Part shown: in pieces, positions 58,497 through 64,000 of the stretch | Layout of the letters: every line of letters starts with the position of its first letter | How positions within the stretch are numbered: the stretch's first letter is position 1 | Assembly (NCBI GenBank): GCA_964234715.1 | Contig: OZ174285.1 | Strand: one strand, 5' to 3' | From: Podarcis melisellensis | Lineage: Eukaryota | DNA length: 64,000 nt | Position numbers and translations under genes: made by a program | The notes under the pieces: model-generated | What the model saw: the letters and a program-made list of their open reading frames with translations, nothing else | Database searches by the model: none | Told to the model about the DNA's origin: nothing

Positions 58497-58821
58497 AAAA
58501 ACTTTTATTTAGCATTTACACCAACAGTCCAGCAGTTACTTAAACTTTTATTTACCTTACAATATTAAGACATTAAACAGCTACAGTGAAAACAAATGCT
58601 ATTGGCAACTTGCAAATAAAGAGTTCCGTTAACACCTAAAAGTCACCCCTCAGACGCAGCACAAGATGGAGGGTGGATTCCTTCTGGATGTTGTAGTCGG
58701 AGAGCATGCGGCCATCTTCCAGCTGCTTCCCAGCAAGGACCAGCCTCTGCTGCTCAAGGGGAATGCCTGCTTTGTCCTGGATCCTAGCTTTCACGGTCTC
58801 AGTGGTGTCACTGGGTTTAAC
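58497..58821 (-). pseudogene. 5'-truncated processed pseudogene of a polyubiquitin (UBB/UBC-type) mRNA: last monomer plus 3' UTR
   Basis: Minus strand reads [61 protein letters not shown], i.e. ubiquitin residues ~17-76 plus one extra residue. Followed by an AT-rich UTR with two AATAAA. Several substitutions, including G76D. Confidence 0.93.
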
Positions 58822-60283
58822 TGGACTTCCTGGCTCTGCTCCGAGTGCCTGTTCCTCTCCTCCTCCTCCTCCTCCTCCTCCTCCTCCTCCAGGACCCTTC
58901 ATCACCCACTATTTTACCCCTATTTATTTTTAAGGAACAACTGCAAATGTTAACTCTCGCCAGGTTTATGGTAAATCTTTCTTACCGATGCAAGATAATA
59001 GTTACAGAAACTGGCTGAGTTTCTTGCTCACTAGGCCAGTCACAGTTGGTGTAGAATTATGTAATTGTCCAAGGTTTCAATTCTGTGAAACCTTGAATAT
59101 TTCTCAGTTGCGAGGAGGTGGCCCAATAAAAATGTCTTCTGTATTATATGCGTATCTCATGCCACTCGTGCCCACTGGAGGAACAGCAAGGAAAGAGGCA
59201 CCCATCTTCTTCCAAACCGCTTAAGTTTTTTTGCGCAATGAAGAGGCATGCAAATTTTGTTAAAGTCATAAAAAGAAGTGCATTCCTGCCGCCAAGGAGA
59301 TTGCAATCTAACCTTCAGCATGGGGGGGAGGGGGAGAATGTTCTGTTCACTTGCCTGTATCTTCATTAAGGGATGAGGACTAAGTGGTTGTGCTGAGCCT
59401 TCCCTTAACTGATTTTAGGATATTAGCAGATGACCTTAAAGCTATAAAAAGAAAGCTTCTGTGTGCAGGCAAGGCCTTATCTGTCTGTTCTTTCATCATT
59501 TTTCTTGTGAAAATGATAGCTGCACACAGACAAATCTGTGCCCATACAAAGACGTACCTTGAAGCTGGAACTGGCTTGTGCCTGCGCCTCTTAGGGAGCA
59601 GGGCAGAGCTGCTGGCTGCATGCCAAGGAGCACTTTGGGCAGGTAATGGATAGGCCAGGATATGGTACCTGAGGGGATAAATAGAGAGGGCTCTGCTGCT
59701 AAGACTTCAGTTTTCATAAAATTCCGGTCTCCGTGGTGGAAAAGGAAACCATTCTCATAAAGCAAATTTGGGGGGAGGTGAAGGGATCCTTTACTTGTTG
59801 CAAGAGTCAGGGAGACCTTCCTGCTCACCACTTGGCCCCAGGACCTTCATTCAGTTGGAAGGCTGAAATGGAACAGCAGGTTATACCGGCATGCTTGCAA
59901 AAATAGATTTGTCCTGCTGCACGGGTGCAATTTTGTTGGATTACGTGGCCCAAGTTAGTGTGTGTGTGTGTGTATGTGTGCGTTGCTTTTTTTCCCACTG
60001 ACTCCGATACACAGCGTCTCTGTCCCTTCTCTAGACAGCAGCTTCTGATGAGTCTTAATCCTTGGCCGAGAGAGCCTTGCTGGGCGGGCAGCAAGGGGCA
60101 CAGGCCTCTGCCACTTTGTGGCATGATGAGAGGGCGCCAACACGGCCACTGAGGATGTGTGCGAGCAGAGGCACCCTAAGGCTAGAAGATGACATTGCTT
60201 CTGTGCTTAGAACGTCTGCTGTGAAACTCCTAACTGGGCAGCCCTCTCAGAAGCAGAAGGCCCTGCTGTTTCTGGAGGAGAAG

Positions 60284-62630
60284 ATGAAGAAGCTTCTGCA
60301 AGGGCCAGCGAGCGAGCTCTCCCTGAGCCAGAATCACCACCAGCAGCTTTCCCTCGTTGAAATAGAAACGGACGCCTTTGTCTGTGGCGTCAATAGGAAA
60401 TCTGCAAGCAGTGACTTTTCCGCTGCTCAGGGGAGGAGCCCTGGGACCAGGGAGGCCAGTAATGGTGGGCTGGACTGGGATGGATACATCGAAGCCCCAC
60501 GGGCGTTAGTTCCAAGCCAGTGTGACTTAGGGGGCGTCTCCGGCCGCCTGGCCTCAGAGAGCCTTCTGGAGCAAATGGAGAGCCCCGAGGAGCAAGCCGA
60601 TCTCGCTGCCCTGAGCCTTGGCACCAACTGGAGGGGAGTTGCTGGGGAAAGAGAAGGGGAAGGGCCCTGCCCTCCAAGCAAGCCCCTCGCCTACACTCCC
60701 TGCAGCCCTGGGCCCAGAGACCGCTCTGCCGATGTCATTGAGTACATCGTGAAAGAGCTCCAAGGGATAAGTCGCATCCAGACCGAGATTGCTGAGCTCC
60801 AGCAGCACCTCACCTTGATCAAAGGCTCCGTGGACGAAGTCTCCAGCTGCGTGGACACTGTTCTGAGCGAGATTGAGGGCCTGCAGAGCAGCTCTGGCCC
60901 CACCAGCAAAAACTCCCCGTTGCCAAAGGCCAAGGCCAGGGAGCCCCTCCTGGGAGGGCCCATCAGAGAGCCAGTGTTGTATTTTTATGGCATCCCAGAG
61001 CAGGAGGGGGAGAACACCAAGGAGCTAGTCCACCGTTTCTTGTCAGAGTACCACTGTTTCAATGGCATTCAGCGTAGCAAGTACATCAAGGATGCTTACA
61101 GATCTGGTGCAGCAACAGGCAAGCAGCTGGCCCCACGACCCGCTGTTGTAAAGCTTGCTAACGCTGAGCAGCGAGACTTCATTCTCCAGAAATCGATTCT
61201 TTTGCAAAGTGCAGGAGTTACCATTGTGGCCAGCAGTGAGCAAAGCCAGCAGAACGGCCAGGTGGGTCCTGGGGCACAGCTGGGCACCTTGCCCTCGCCA
61301 GGCCAGAGTGGGAACCACTGGGGCTCCTTGCACATTCGTGGGGAAGTGGTCAGGACAGATGGAGATGGGCAGCTCCAGGTGGACTCTTGCCAGGCTCAGC
61401 AGGAAAACGCTTGCCAAGAGGTTCACCACCGCGTAGGGGAGAGGCTTAACTTTCAACCGAAATCCACCCTACCTAGGAAGAGCAACTTAATTGCTGAACT
61501 TGAAGAAAAAGTGGGGAGAGTTGTACAAATAATGGGCACTAGTGAGCAGACTTTGCACAGAAGCAGCTCTTCCAGTGGAGTCCTTGATGCGTCCCACAAG
61601 AAGCTGGAAGGCCCTGGGCATGAGAACAAAGGCAGGGATTCCTTGCCATCCCCGGAGTGCTTGGGCAAGGTGCCCGCCTTGTGTGAGGGAGGAGGGGGAC
61701 GTGCTTCAGATGCTGAAAATGCCACCAAGGGCAGCTCCTCTCCTGTGGAAGAGGACCAAGCAGGAGGGCTGACTCCAGGGGAAAGCGAGACGGACTGTGA
61801 TGCCACCACGCTGGAGTTTCTCAGTCCTGAGCAAGTCAGTCTCCTGGAGGAGGCACCGGTGGCCATGACCACTCCCGGCTGTGATGGTGCTCTGCGCAAA
61901 TTGGTTGACAGCAGTGAGACGCTCAAAGACATGATCCAGATTGACCTGAACGAGCAGGACCCAACCGATCAGGTCTTCAGGGATGTCCTAGAAAATTCCC
62001 AGTACTTCCTTGAGCACTCTCGGGACAGCATTGATCTCGTGGACATGAGGTTTTACACTAACAAACTGGGCAAAGCACTGAATCACTTCCGGTCTGCGCT
62101 GCAGGTGGTGTTCCACAAACTGGAGACCGGGGACCCAGAAGTCCTCCTTGAAGGGGAAAAGAGCTTCCATATGAACAGTGAGCCAGCTCCTGCCCTCCGT
62201 AGCCCAAGTGTGCACGGCAGCTTGGATACCTTTGCTGAAACGCCCCCTAGTCAGTCTTCTGAGAGCCAGGCTAACACGACTGTGAGCAGTGACAGTGTGG
62301 GCCTGATGCAGAGGGCTCTTCCCAGTGCTTCATTGCCTCTTGATGAAGCTCCAGTCCCTGACCTGGTGCCCCCACCGGATTCTGAGAGCTGTGTGGAGCA
62401 GCCCTTCCCCTCTGGAGAGGCCCAGCAGGATCCGGGTTCTGCGCCTGTGCAGCCCGGCGGGTGCCGACCTATGAGCCTCGAGAAGGTGTGTGCCGAGACC
62501 ATCTACCTGAACAAGTGCATCAACAACTTCAAGAATGTCCTGAGGGAAAAGAGGCAGATGCGTCGGAGGCTCTTGAAGGAAGTGGCCCAGGAGGCAAGCT
62601 GGACTTCCTCGGCTGAAGAGATTCATTCAG
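60284..62630 (+). CDS. UNC13B: UNC13B large exon encoding the brain-type bMunc13-2 N-terminus (MKKLLQ...; coiled coil; two CaM-binding helices)
   Basis: ORF 60062..62662. MKKLL start, DVIEYIVKELQGISRIQTEIAELQQHL, KLGKALNHFRSALQVVFHKLE and SLEKVCAETIYLNKCINNFKNVLREKR match rodent bMunc13-2 as recalled. Phase-1 donor CAG|gtactc at 62630. An in-frame upstream ATG exists at 60155. Confidence 0.9.
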
Positions 62631-64000
62631 GTACTCCCAAAGTTCTTGAGATTTGCTGGTGAAATGCTTGCTCGTTTTTTGTCAGAAAGTTTAGCAGCTG
62701 CAGGCAGAATGATTAAATAGAAATGGTTTATTGAAGTTTGGTCAGAGATAGCAGATGATAAGAGCCAAAGACAAAGGCTGCCCTATCTCTGCACCCTTAA
62801 CAAATGCAAAAAAACACACAAAACCCCAGTTTCTGGAGGTCTGCCAAATGATTTGTGATGTTCTATCTCCAAGGAAGCAGACATTGACTTCAGATCTGCT
62901 TCTTGGCAAACTGAAAGCATGTTGGGAAAGTGTTTCCAATACCATCCACTTGGAAGCACGAGCTTTTCCATGTCTCTTTACTTTCACAGGAAATATTGAA
63001 CCAGGAGCCAGTTGCCATTTCCCATATAAATTTGCCAGGGAAGCTGAAATCGCCTGAAATGTTTAAATAACCACCCCCAAGGAAGAGCTCCGCTAGAACA
63101 CTGTTTTCCTCCATGTAATAATGCCCCTTGAGAAATCCACATAAGAGGTGTTCTGTTGGAGTGCAGAATTCATGTGGATCGTACCCTCCATTATGTTTGT
63201 CATGTGCCTTACTTCAAGAGCCCTCTTCTGTGGAGTTTATATTGAGGACTGTTCAGATGATAATCAGTTGTGGGGTCCACGTGAGCTGCTTCCTAGCGAT
63301 TGTAGGCACTTGAGATTCCAATTGGGTTAGGCTTCGTGTTTTACCTTTGTGGGTTTGTGAAAATCAAACTTCAGAACAGTGGAGCTTGACTTTAGGTAGC
63401 AATAAGGAGACTTGAAGGAGAGCAAAGGGGAAGAGCAGAAGCAAAATTCATCAGAAGCGTCACCCAGCGATATTCAGGGAGCTGCTTTGGTCCTTATGTA
63501 CTACTGAGCTGCAAAAGGACCATGTCTTGGGGGCGGGGGGGGGGCACCACCTGCTCACTCGCTAAAATAAGCAAAAGATTTGCACATATTTGAAATTGCA
63601 CCTCTGGAGCTGACCCTTAGGTATAGTGGCAAAGGCGCTTTCAGCTCCCCCCTAAGGAATGCCCCACCTGATTCCAGACTCTCATGTGTGATGCATGTTT
63701 CCTGAAATTGCGTCCAAGTGGGCCCACAGTAGCCCCCTCCACCACACCGGACAGCAGCGCCTGTCTCCAAGGATAAAGATGAGGCTCTCTCTCCCCTCTT
63801 CCTTCTGCTGTGTGCATTATACAAAGACAGAACATCATGCCTAGGACAGTTTGACACATTGCCCCGTGTGGGAGAATGACTTCTCTCAGAACCCTGCAGT
63901 CCATGCGCCCAGGCCAGAACCACAGTGGCTTCCCACAGCGGCAACATCAAGTCGTAGTGTACTCTGCATGCGCATCTCCCACATTTATGGGGCATGCCAC

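Follow-up and report, generated by a model that had tools for sequence, protein, structure and literature searches.

The window analysed here is a stretch of 64,000 nucleotides from Podarcis melisellensis (contig OZ174285.1 of assembly GCA_964234715.1), and the element that we describe lies in one large exon on its forward strand, the first coding exon of the b isoform of UNC13B (bMunc13-2). This exon hosts a coiled coil followed by a domain that resembles an RNA recognition motif (RRM). We consider it likely that the two are the remnant of the ORF1 protein (ORF1p) of a long interspersed nuclear element (LINE), captured in an ancestral UNC13 gene before the duplication that separated UNC13B from UNC13C, and so before the shark-tetrapod split.

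An initial annotation of the window had placed a heptad coiled coil at 60731-60883, followed at 60968-61231 by an RRM of ORF1p type, and had proposed that the b isoform arose by exaptation of a LINE ORF1. The coiled coil is present exactly there, in the frame of one long open reading frame (ORF). The second stretch is also present and in the same frame, but with a shift of three codons: the first residue of LYFYG is encoded at 60977 and GVTI runs up to 61225, while 60968 is the E of EPVLYFYG and 61231 the A of VTIVA. The coordinates of all features are collected in Table 1.

An ORF1p-type RRM in UNC13B

The relationship between the RRM-like domain and ORF1p only becomes visible when evolutionary information is included in the searches. 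In order to make use of this information we built an RRM-only profile from 39 tetrapod orthologues, which we call A2. The only credible matches of A2 in the PDB are chains of human L1 ORF1p (2w7a, 2ykp, 2yko and 2ldy, E 0.009-0.04), and these are aligned in the register that the initial annotation had proposed. A search of 1.84 billion representative proteins with HMMER returned 95 proteins at E<=1e-3, which include UNC13B orthologues, the basking-shark exon (E 1e-15) and fish UNC13C (E 1.6e-5). Beyond UNC13B and UNC13C there are about 85 proteins of 150-450 amino acids (E 5e-7 to 1e-3), mostly matched over nearly the full profile. When aligned, the members of this set share basic residues before beta1 and the motifs G-x-x-E, H-R-x-G, P-R-P-I-x-V-K-F and L-K-G-S-G; after the RRM they continue into a C-terminal domain marked by E-D-L-T ... 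W..DG.

The set can be linked to LINE ORF1 through several of its members. For example, one of them (P0100) is encoded 139 nucleotides upstream of an ORF of 1373 amino acids with Exo_endo_phos and RVT_1 domains, on two independent contigs, and judged by this organization the locus is a complete LINE. Another (P0145) exceeds the gathering score of the Pfam family Transposase_22, with 26.9 bits. At E<=0.01, Pfam recognizes Transposase_22 in 4 of 81 of the ORF1-like matches and Baculo_FP_2nd in 7. Furthermore, a profile made from 68 ORF1-like matches finds human L1 ORF1p at E 3e-10, in an alignment that spans the RRM and enters the C-terminal domain, and an hhalign comparison of A2 with the same LINE set gives a probability of 99.6%.

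The predicted structure points to the same family. We ran AlphaFold2 on the translation of 60722-61258 together with the 39 tetrapod orthologues, which gave an overall mean predicted local distance difference test score (pLDDT) of 76.5. The model consists of a helix at residues 2-56 (55 residues, pLDDT about 90), a disordered linker at residues 58-80 and then, in order, a strand (85-89), a helix (99-109), two strands (122-127 and 141-145), a helix (148-163) and a last strand (167-170). This is the beta-alpha-beta-beta-alpha-beta fold that the initial annotation had expected, and the known structures nearest to it are ORF1p RRMs. The top six Foldseek matches are L1 ORF1p chains (best E 9e-4, template modelling score 0.61 by target), as are the top five in VIA-align (Z 8.8-9.7, root mean square deviation 2.6-2.9 A over 82-90 residues), where other RRMs reach at most Z 7.9. 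The nearest ESM Atlas clusters include two with 91-99% Transposase_22, plus Baculo_FP clusters. At the level of profiles, the RRM-like domain is therefore homologous to bona fide ORF1p RRMs, and its predicted fold agrees with this assignment.

Some of our results pull the other way. No match to Transposase_22 (PF02994) was found in Pfam, even at E<=10, for the exon or its 167-amino-acid stretch as single sequences, nor for the 39 orthologues scanned singly, in which only coiled-coil families were detected. A direct check of a single sequence against the Transposase_22 profile, as the initial annotation had suggested, is thus negative, and UNC13B stays below the gathering score of 22.4 bits; the link to LINE ORF1 and L1 ORF1p appears with profiles. 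The E-values of A2 to human L1 ORF1p quoted above are borderline, and the hhalign probability is partly circular because the LINE set was chosen using A2.

Could the domain instead be an ordinary cellular RRM, or another ferredoxin-like fold, whose resemblance to ORF1p is convergent or due to chance? We regard this as extremely improbable. The searches of Pfam and the PDB with single sequences (exon, 167-amino-acid and 88-amino-acid stretches), which gave only weak coiled-coil or low-complexity matches, would sit comfortably with such an origin, as would the many generic RRMs at Z 7-8, just 1-2 units under ORF1p, and the Foldseek E-values of other RRMs, which lie within about tenfold of those of ORF1p. 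Yet none of the sequence searches returned a cellular RRM family: Pfam RRM_1 has no match at E<=10, the canonical RNP1 and RNP2 motifs are absent, and the motifs that are shared are specific to ORF1p. Once coiled-coil and low-complexity matches are set aside, all sequence matches are ORF1-like proteins or L1 ORF1p, and about 85 independent matches at E<=1e-3 among 1.84e9 proteins are not chance. The A2 matches, the match of the LINE profile to L1 ORF1p and the match of UNC13C to LINE proteins (see below) largely refute a cellular origin.

We note a few further observations on the matched proteins. The LINE that encodes P0100 (L001:296-5479 and L002:205-5388) is apparently intact: its ORF1 of 307 amino acids comprises a coiled coil, an RRM and a C-terminal domain, and its ORF2 has a weak PHD-like match, an apurinic/apyrimidinic endonuclease and a reverse transcriptase. 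The surroundings of P0092 (L005) are retroelement fragments, with no adjacent LINE ORF2 and with a long-terminal-repeat-type reverse transcriptase/RNase H and a NADAR ORF nearby. P0102 (1165 amino acids) has an ORF1-type RRM fused to, or beside, a Pao peptidase and DUF5641. The arrangements of P0102 and P0092 may be gene-call chimeras or nested insertions.

Conservation and selection

Within the exon, the coiled coil and the RRM-like domain form islands of conservation. Identity in the coiled coil is 80-99% among tetrapods and 52-60% to the basking-shark protein; in the RRM-like domain it is 53-88% in amniotes and 28-40% to the basking shark. The linker and the flanks, in contrast, have an identity of only 0-45% (linker 8-39%). 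The ratio of nonsynonymous to synonymous substitution rates (dN/dS), estimated by the Nei-Gojobori method against three squamate contigs, is 0.02-0.04 for the coiled coil, 0.05-0.23 for the RRM-like domain, 0.5-1.1 for the linker and 0.2-0.5 for other non-island stretches of the exon. These ratios are approximate, as dS is near saturation, and dN alone gives the same contrast between islands and flanks. Both parts of the module are under strong purifying selection, and the two stretches are more than a chance pattern.

In the AlphaFold2 model the helix ends 28 residues upstream of beta1, which places the coiled coil directly N-terminal of the RRM. The linker itself appears to derive by decay from the C-terminal part of the coiled coil of the ancestral ORF1p; in UNC13C the equivalent stretch is still collinear with the coiled coils of LINE ORF1.

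Other variation in the exon is also worth recording. The variable loop between beta2 and beta3 of the RRM-like domain has an in-frame insertion of 3 nucleotides (CAA) at window position 61112 in the transcript contigs of a close relative, and a deletion of 4 residues in mammals. There are two more conservation islands on the forward strand, at 61934-62158 and 62459-62608, with a dN/dS of 0.03-0.10 and 76-96% identity across squamates and birds; no Pfam match was found for either. The first of these recurs in teleost exons without the RRM, and the second is a basic amphipathic stretch. We presume that the latter may be the calmodulin-binding region reported for bMunc13-2.

A module shared with UNC13C

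The same module can be recognized in a paralogue, UNC13C. The UNC13C sequences that we compared are those of ray-finned fish. These carry the same helix motif and, 76 residues later, an RRM with clearer ORF1p hallmarks. A profile of this RRM finds L1 ORF1p in the PDB at E 1.7e-4, with the next match at just E 0.11. In hhalign comparisons it matches the LINE set, which was chosen without UNC13C, with a probability of 99.6% (E 6e-24), and A2 with 97.5% (E 8e-12), while gar UNC13C alone matches Pfam Transposase_22 with 17.2 bits (E 0.006). Moreover, the coiled coil and the RRM of UNC13C are collinear with the coiled coil and the RRM of LINE proteins over 137 columns. The b isoform of UNC13B and UNC13C thus share a two-part module in the same order, and a basking-shark exon of UNC13B type carries both parts as well. 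The initial annotation is supported in its reading of an exapted LINE ORF1 in this exon, but the b isoform is not alone in having the module, since UNC13C carries it in a more ORF1p-like form.

A tree of the RRM, built on 100 columns, recovers UNC13B and UNC13C each as monophyletic, with support values of 98 and 96 in the Shimodaira-Hasegawa approximate likelihood ratio test. The two fall together, separated from 67 of the 68 LINE proteins, with moderate support for the joint group (86). The simplest reading of these sequences is a single capture before the split of UNC13B and UNC13C, because of the tree, the shared helix motif and the equivalent position in the paralogues. As the module is found in UNC13B-type sequence of a shark, in UNC13C of ray-finned fish and in UNC13B of tetrapods, the capture would predate the gnathostome radiation.

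The sharing could also have come about by two independent captures of a LINE ORF1, or by a later gene conversion that copied the module from one gene to the other. The moderate support for the joint clade leaves some room for this, and the E-value of UNC13C to the UNC13B profile (1.6e-5) is no better than that of many LINE ORF1 proteins. However, the helices of UNC13B and UNC13C share a specific motif that is absent from LINE proteins (52% identity according to Kawabe et al., PMC5379939), the module occupies corresponding positions in the large N-terminal exons of both paralogues, both lack the C-terminal domain, and both lie on one side of the tree. This makes separate captures or gene conversion very unlikely in our view.

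A further question is whether the coiled coil came from the LINE at all. It could be an older host element, to which ELKS binds, with a retrotransposon fragment that supplied the RRM having landed beside it. We think this distinctly unlikely. It would explain the elopomorph exons described below, which have the coiled coil without the RRM, and matches between coiled coils are inherently unspecific; that the hhalign match of UNC13B to LINE ORF1 begins only at the RRM is what it would lead us to expect. On the other hand, the helix of UNC13C runs into the RRM at the spacing of LINE ORF1, collinear over the whole length given above, and the length upstream of the RRM is similar (a median of about 80 amino acids in the LINE matches and 76 in UNC13C). 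Both parts occur in ORF1p order in the UNC13B of shark, frog, reptile, bird and mammal and in the UNC13C of fish, and the state with only a coiled coil in teleosts is more simply explained as a loss.

The capture of a whole ORF1p remains the reading that we prefer, and several points count against it. The profile-profile alignment of UNC13B to LINE ORF1 begins at the RRM and not in the coiled coil, a start that fits a decayed UNC13B linker. Similarity between coiled coils carries little information, so that a joint capture of both parts depends mainly on UNC13C and on the architecture; the LINE origin of the coiled coil rests on that architecture and on the UNC13C collinearity, and not on specific sequence similarity. 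The grouping of UNC13B with UNC13C is not strongly supported, given 100 columns and one long LINE branch that joins them. Finally, three UNC13B-b-like exons of elopomorph teleosts (P0082, P0083 and P0084, including Aldrovandia and Albula) keep the coiled coil without the RRM. These exons also retain a later conserved island, and the absence of the RRM from them suggests a secondary, lineage-specific loss in which the helix was retained.

Changes since the proposed capture

We propose that the N-terminal region of an ancestral UNC13 gene took up a LINE ORF1 protein with three parts: coiled coil, RRM and C-terminal domain. The first two would have arrived together, and the third would have been lost. 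The helix would have been kept as a parallel, probably trimeric, self-associating coiled coil onto which ELKS1 docks. The RRM would have been kept as a folded partner domain that, in UNC13B, may have exchanged RNA binding for a role in structure or in protein binding, while the UNC13C copy retains an ORF1p-like basic surface and may still bind nucleic acid.

The C-terminal domain of ORF1p (Tnp_22_dsRBD) was not found after the RRM in either UNC13B or UNC13C. The alignments of the two paralogues diverge right after beta4, UNC13B does not match the columns of this domain in the LINE profile, and the pLDDT of the model is below 50 from residue 174 onward. We also considered the stretch HWGSLHIRGEVVRTDGDGQL (61310-61370) as a relic of the domain on account of its W...DG.I pattern, and rejected it as it is conserved within squamates only.

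The charge of the RRM-like domain has changed considerably. Its net charge in UNC13B is -1.2 +/- 1.9 with an isoelectric point (pI) of 6.4 (39 sequences), and in LINE proteins +6.0 with a pI of 9.6 (68 proteins); in UNC13C it is +5.2. The basic surface with which ORF1p binds nucleic acid is accordingly absent from the UNC13B domain. Acidic residues stand in place of the conserved basic pair before beta1, and the H-R-x-G motif of ORF1p now reads Y-R-x-G. The replacement of the basic charge and of these conserved basic residues is the reason to suppose that the UNC13B domain has been repurposed. RNA binding by this domain is doubtful, as the basic charge is lost and the C-terminal domain is missing, and the suggestion that it may bind RNA was the weakest part of the initial annotation. 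A loss of RNA binding is read from charge only, and a point in favour of retained binding is that beta1 of UNC13B has two nearly invariant tyrosines, which could still stack bases.

The helix seems to have retained its capacity for self-association. Ile, Val or Leu occupies every a and d position of its core but one, and these residues are mostly beta-branched. Under the rules established for coiled coils, beta-branched residues at a and d favour trimers, so a trimer would be favoured here. ESMFold2 run with three copies gives a score of 0.51 (best control 0.00) and a parallel, in-register interface over residues 5-55, with at least 38% of contacts agreeing between runs and a partner pLDDT of at least 61. 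The mark for this score was calibrated on two copies, where it was reached by 21 of 30 one-chain pairs and by none of 23 single chains. It should be said that the job used three copies only and no alignment, and its outcome may reflect a general tendency of helices to zip together. Self-association of the helix is thus supported by the model, and a three-copy job does not fix the stoichiometry.

In summary, the module lies inside a spliced host exon, at a position conserved from shark to mammals, and is not followed by the ORF2 of a mobile element. For these reasons we regard it as a domesticated derivative and not as a copy of an element. Its RRM-like domain is a derived relative of Transposase_22 and not a typical member, as it falls below the Pfam score and has neither the C-terminal domain nor the basic surface.

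The host exon and its transcription

The open frame is one piece of 866 codons (60062-62662, forward strand). We searched the exon as one piece rather than as part of a joined, spliced gene model. Transcript contigs from two runs of a relative with 97-98% identity cover exactly 60037-62630, with zero depth in the flanks, and run on into unrelated sequence at both ends. That these two runs are RNA is only guessed. However, the contig ends coincide with an AG acceptor and a GT donor and have foreign sequence beyond them, and the contigs are therefore spliced transcripts. The exon is transcribed and spliced, and at least one upstream exon exists. The initial annotation had taken a single intronless exon as a sign of retro-origin, an argument that has little weight here: the exon is spliced at both ends and the module makes up only about 170 of its approximately 780 codons. 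Translation must start downstream of the in-frame TAA within the exon, at one of the two candidate ATG codons in Table 1. A bird ORF reaches further up than the second of these, to about 60185, and residues are conserved there.

The identity of the gene follows from orthologues in which the same N-terminal sequence is joined to the C1-C2B-MUN-C2C part of bMunc13-2. Anolis 'Unc-13 homolog B' (1901 amino acids, with C1, C2 and MUN domains) aligns from its residue 1 to the window from 60284 onwards, as do the 'unc-13 homolog B' isoforms of horse and opossum, which have the same domains. The nearest relatives of the exon translation are those of squamates (77-80% identity over the region), followed by birds (about 75%) and mammals (about 60%). 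Among the other matches of the translation are many bird fragments with the label 'UN13C, partial'.

Table 1. Features of the UNC13B exon and of the ORF1p-derived module (positions in the window)
Feature	Position	Strand	Evidence
Large exon, first coding exon of the b isoform (bMunc13-2) of UNC13B	60037..62630	+	Transcript contigs; alignment to unc-13 homolog B orthologues
Exon acceptor AG	60035-60036	+	Sharp transcript-contig end
Exon donor GT	62631-62632	+	Sharp transcript-contig end
In-frame TAA inside exon	60056-60058	+	Sequence reading
Candidate start ATG	60155	+	Sequence reading; in frame
Candidate start ATG (MKKLLQG)	60284	+	Anolis, kiwi and horse proteins begin at matching position
Coiled coil, seven heptads, Ile/Val/Leu at a and d	60731..60883	+	AlphaFold2 helix, pLDDT about 90; conservation
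Variable linker, probably disordered	60884..60958	+	pLDDT <50 at model residues 58-80; low identity; high dN/dS
ORF1p-type RRM-like domain	60959..61243 (about)	+	AlphaFold2 topology; Foldseek, VIA-align; profile matches
RRM-like domain, beta1	60974-60988	+	AlphaFold2
RRM-like domain, alpha1	61016-61048	+	AlphaFold2
RRM-like domain, beta2	61085-61102	+	AlphaFold2
RRM-like domain, beta3	61142-61156	+	AlphaFold2
RRM-like domain, alpha2	61163-61210	+	AlphaFold2
RRM-like domain, beta4	61220-61231	+	AlphaFold2
Poorly conserved stretch at the expected position of the ORF1p C-terminal domain; no such domain	61259..61933	+	0-45% identity outside squamates

A few neighbouring features were also observed. 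A GT/CA dinucleotide repeat (59949-59988) lies about 50 nucleotides upstream of the exon acceptor. The reverse strand has, about 1.1 kb upstream of the exon, an ORF (58639-58905) that codes for a run of glycines and, after it, for the last three quarters of ubiquitin (Pfam ubiquitin, E 1.6e-20, profile positions 15-72 of 72); this looks like a truncated ubiquitin retrocopy or pseudogene. The whole window contains 200 N, presumably an assembly gap or a masked stretch.

Comparison with known systems

The best match to the module in the PDB, by structure and by sequence, is LINE-1 ORF1p (Transposase_22; PDB 2w7a, 2ykp, 2yko and 2ldy). In both, a non-canonical RRM comes after a coiled coil and has its strands and helices in the same order, and the G-x-P-E, R-x-G and P-R-P-x-V-V-K motifs are common to the two. 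Unlike LINE-1 ORF1p, the UNC13B module has no C-terminal domain and no ORF2 after it, and is embedded in a host exon of 780 codons; its domain is near-neutral rather than basic, acidic before beta1 and below the Pfam gathering score. In the UNC13C (Munc13-3) exon the order of the parts is the same, and UNC13C keeps A-H-R-L-G and K-L-K-G-T-G-I; the UNC13B copy is more diverged.

Our interpretation has been partly anticipated for UNC13C. In their Methods, Kitao, Ichiyanagi and Nakagawa (2025, Genome Res 35:1287, PMC12129022) state that a canonical exon of UNC13C is homologous to L1 ORF1, a case found by direct search against Dfam ORF1p (E<1e-10), and they give an AlphaFold view of its coiled coil and RRM, explicitly without further analysis. 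In the preprint of that work 'UNC13B' occurs zero times. A full-text literature search for 'Munc13-3' with 'RRM' gave nothing relevant. For the UNC13B case we found no published mention, with no literature search aimed at bMunc13-2 or UNC13B together with ORF1 or RRM terms.

A function of the coiled coil is known from earlier work. Kawabe et al. (2017, J Cell Biol 216:1143, PMC5379939) found that deletion of the helix, residues 145-187 of rodent bMunc13-2, abolishes binding to ELKS1, in line with the initial annotation's statement that an N-terminal coiled coil of this protein binds ELKS. Residues 70-204, i.e. the helix and its flanks, ending before the RRM, suffice for this binding, and the helix governs the anchoring of bMunc13-2 at active zones (PMC5379939). 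Window 60731-60883 is the orthologue of this motif. The helix of Munc13-3 does not bind ELKS1, and the N-termini of bMunc13-2 and Munc13-3 were called unrelated apart from the short helix (PMC5379939). In that study the motif figures as a host innovation that stands on its own, with no description of the adjacent RRM-like domain or of a retrotransposon origin. A biochemical construct used in that study (1-305) ends where the RRM-like domain ends in mammalian orthologues, and no function was assigned to the RRM-like part of it (PMC5379939).

Implications

Domesticated LINE ORF1 proteins are rare; L1TD1, the 'Lyosin' isoform of MYL4 and a few other splice isoforms have been described. Like the UNC13 module, L1TD1 and Lyosin are host proteins derived from LINE ORF1 and are under purifying selection (PMC4161310, PMC12129022). 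L1TD1 is eutherian and Lyosin sauropsid (PMC4161310, PMC12129022), whereas the UNC13 module is far older, being present in shark, ray-finned fish and tetrapods. It also keeps just the coiled coil and the RRM, and it resides in a presynaptic priming factor instead of a stem-cell or testis protein.

What is new here is that the ELKS1-binding motif is part of the module, that the capture would precede the gnathostome radiation and that the two paralogues differ sharply in charge. The protein that carries the module is a core factor in synaptic vesicle priming, and it is the coiled coil of the module that experiments have defined as the motif which binds ELKS1 and targets bMunc13-2 to a subset of active zones. 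This motif would thereby gain an evolutionary origin, and beside it our predictions reveal an unrecognized, strongly conserved folded domain. The N-termini of bMunc13-2 and Munc13-3, beyond the short helix by which they were compared, share a two-domain module. If dated correctly, its capture took place before the shark-tetrapod split, far earlier than those of L1TD1 and Lyosin. Testable predictions follow for the oligomeric state of the helix and for a difference in RNA binding between the paralogues.

A bolder proposal, which we hold to be fairly unlikely, is that bMunc13-2 and Munc13-3 are constitutive parallel trimers by virtue of their ORF1p-derived coiled coil, that the basic RRM of Munc13-3 still binds RNA at the presynapse and that the one in UNC13B now has a protein ligand instead. 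If this were true, a retrotransposon protein would supply both the address of bMunc13-2 at the active zone, through the docking of ELKS1, and a threefold pre-assembly of MUN domains at release sites. It would also be the oldest known domestication of a LINE ORF1p, in a core component of vertebrate neurotransmitter release.

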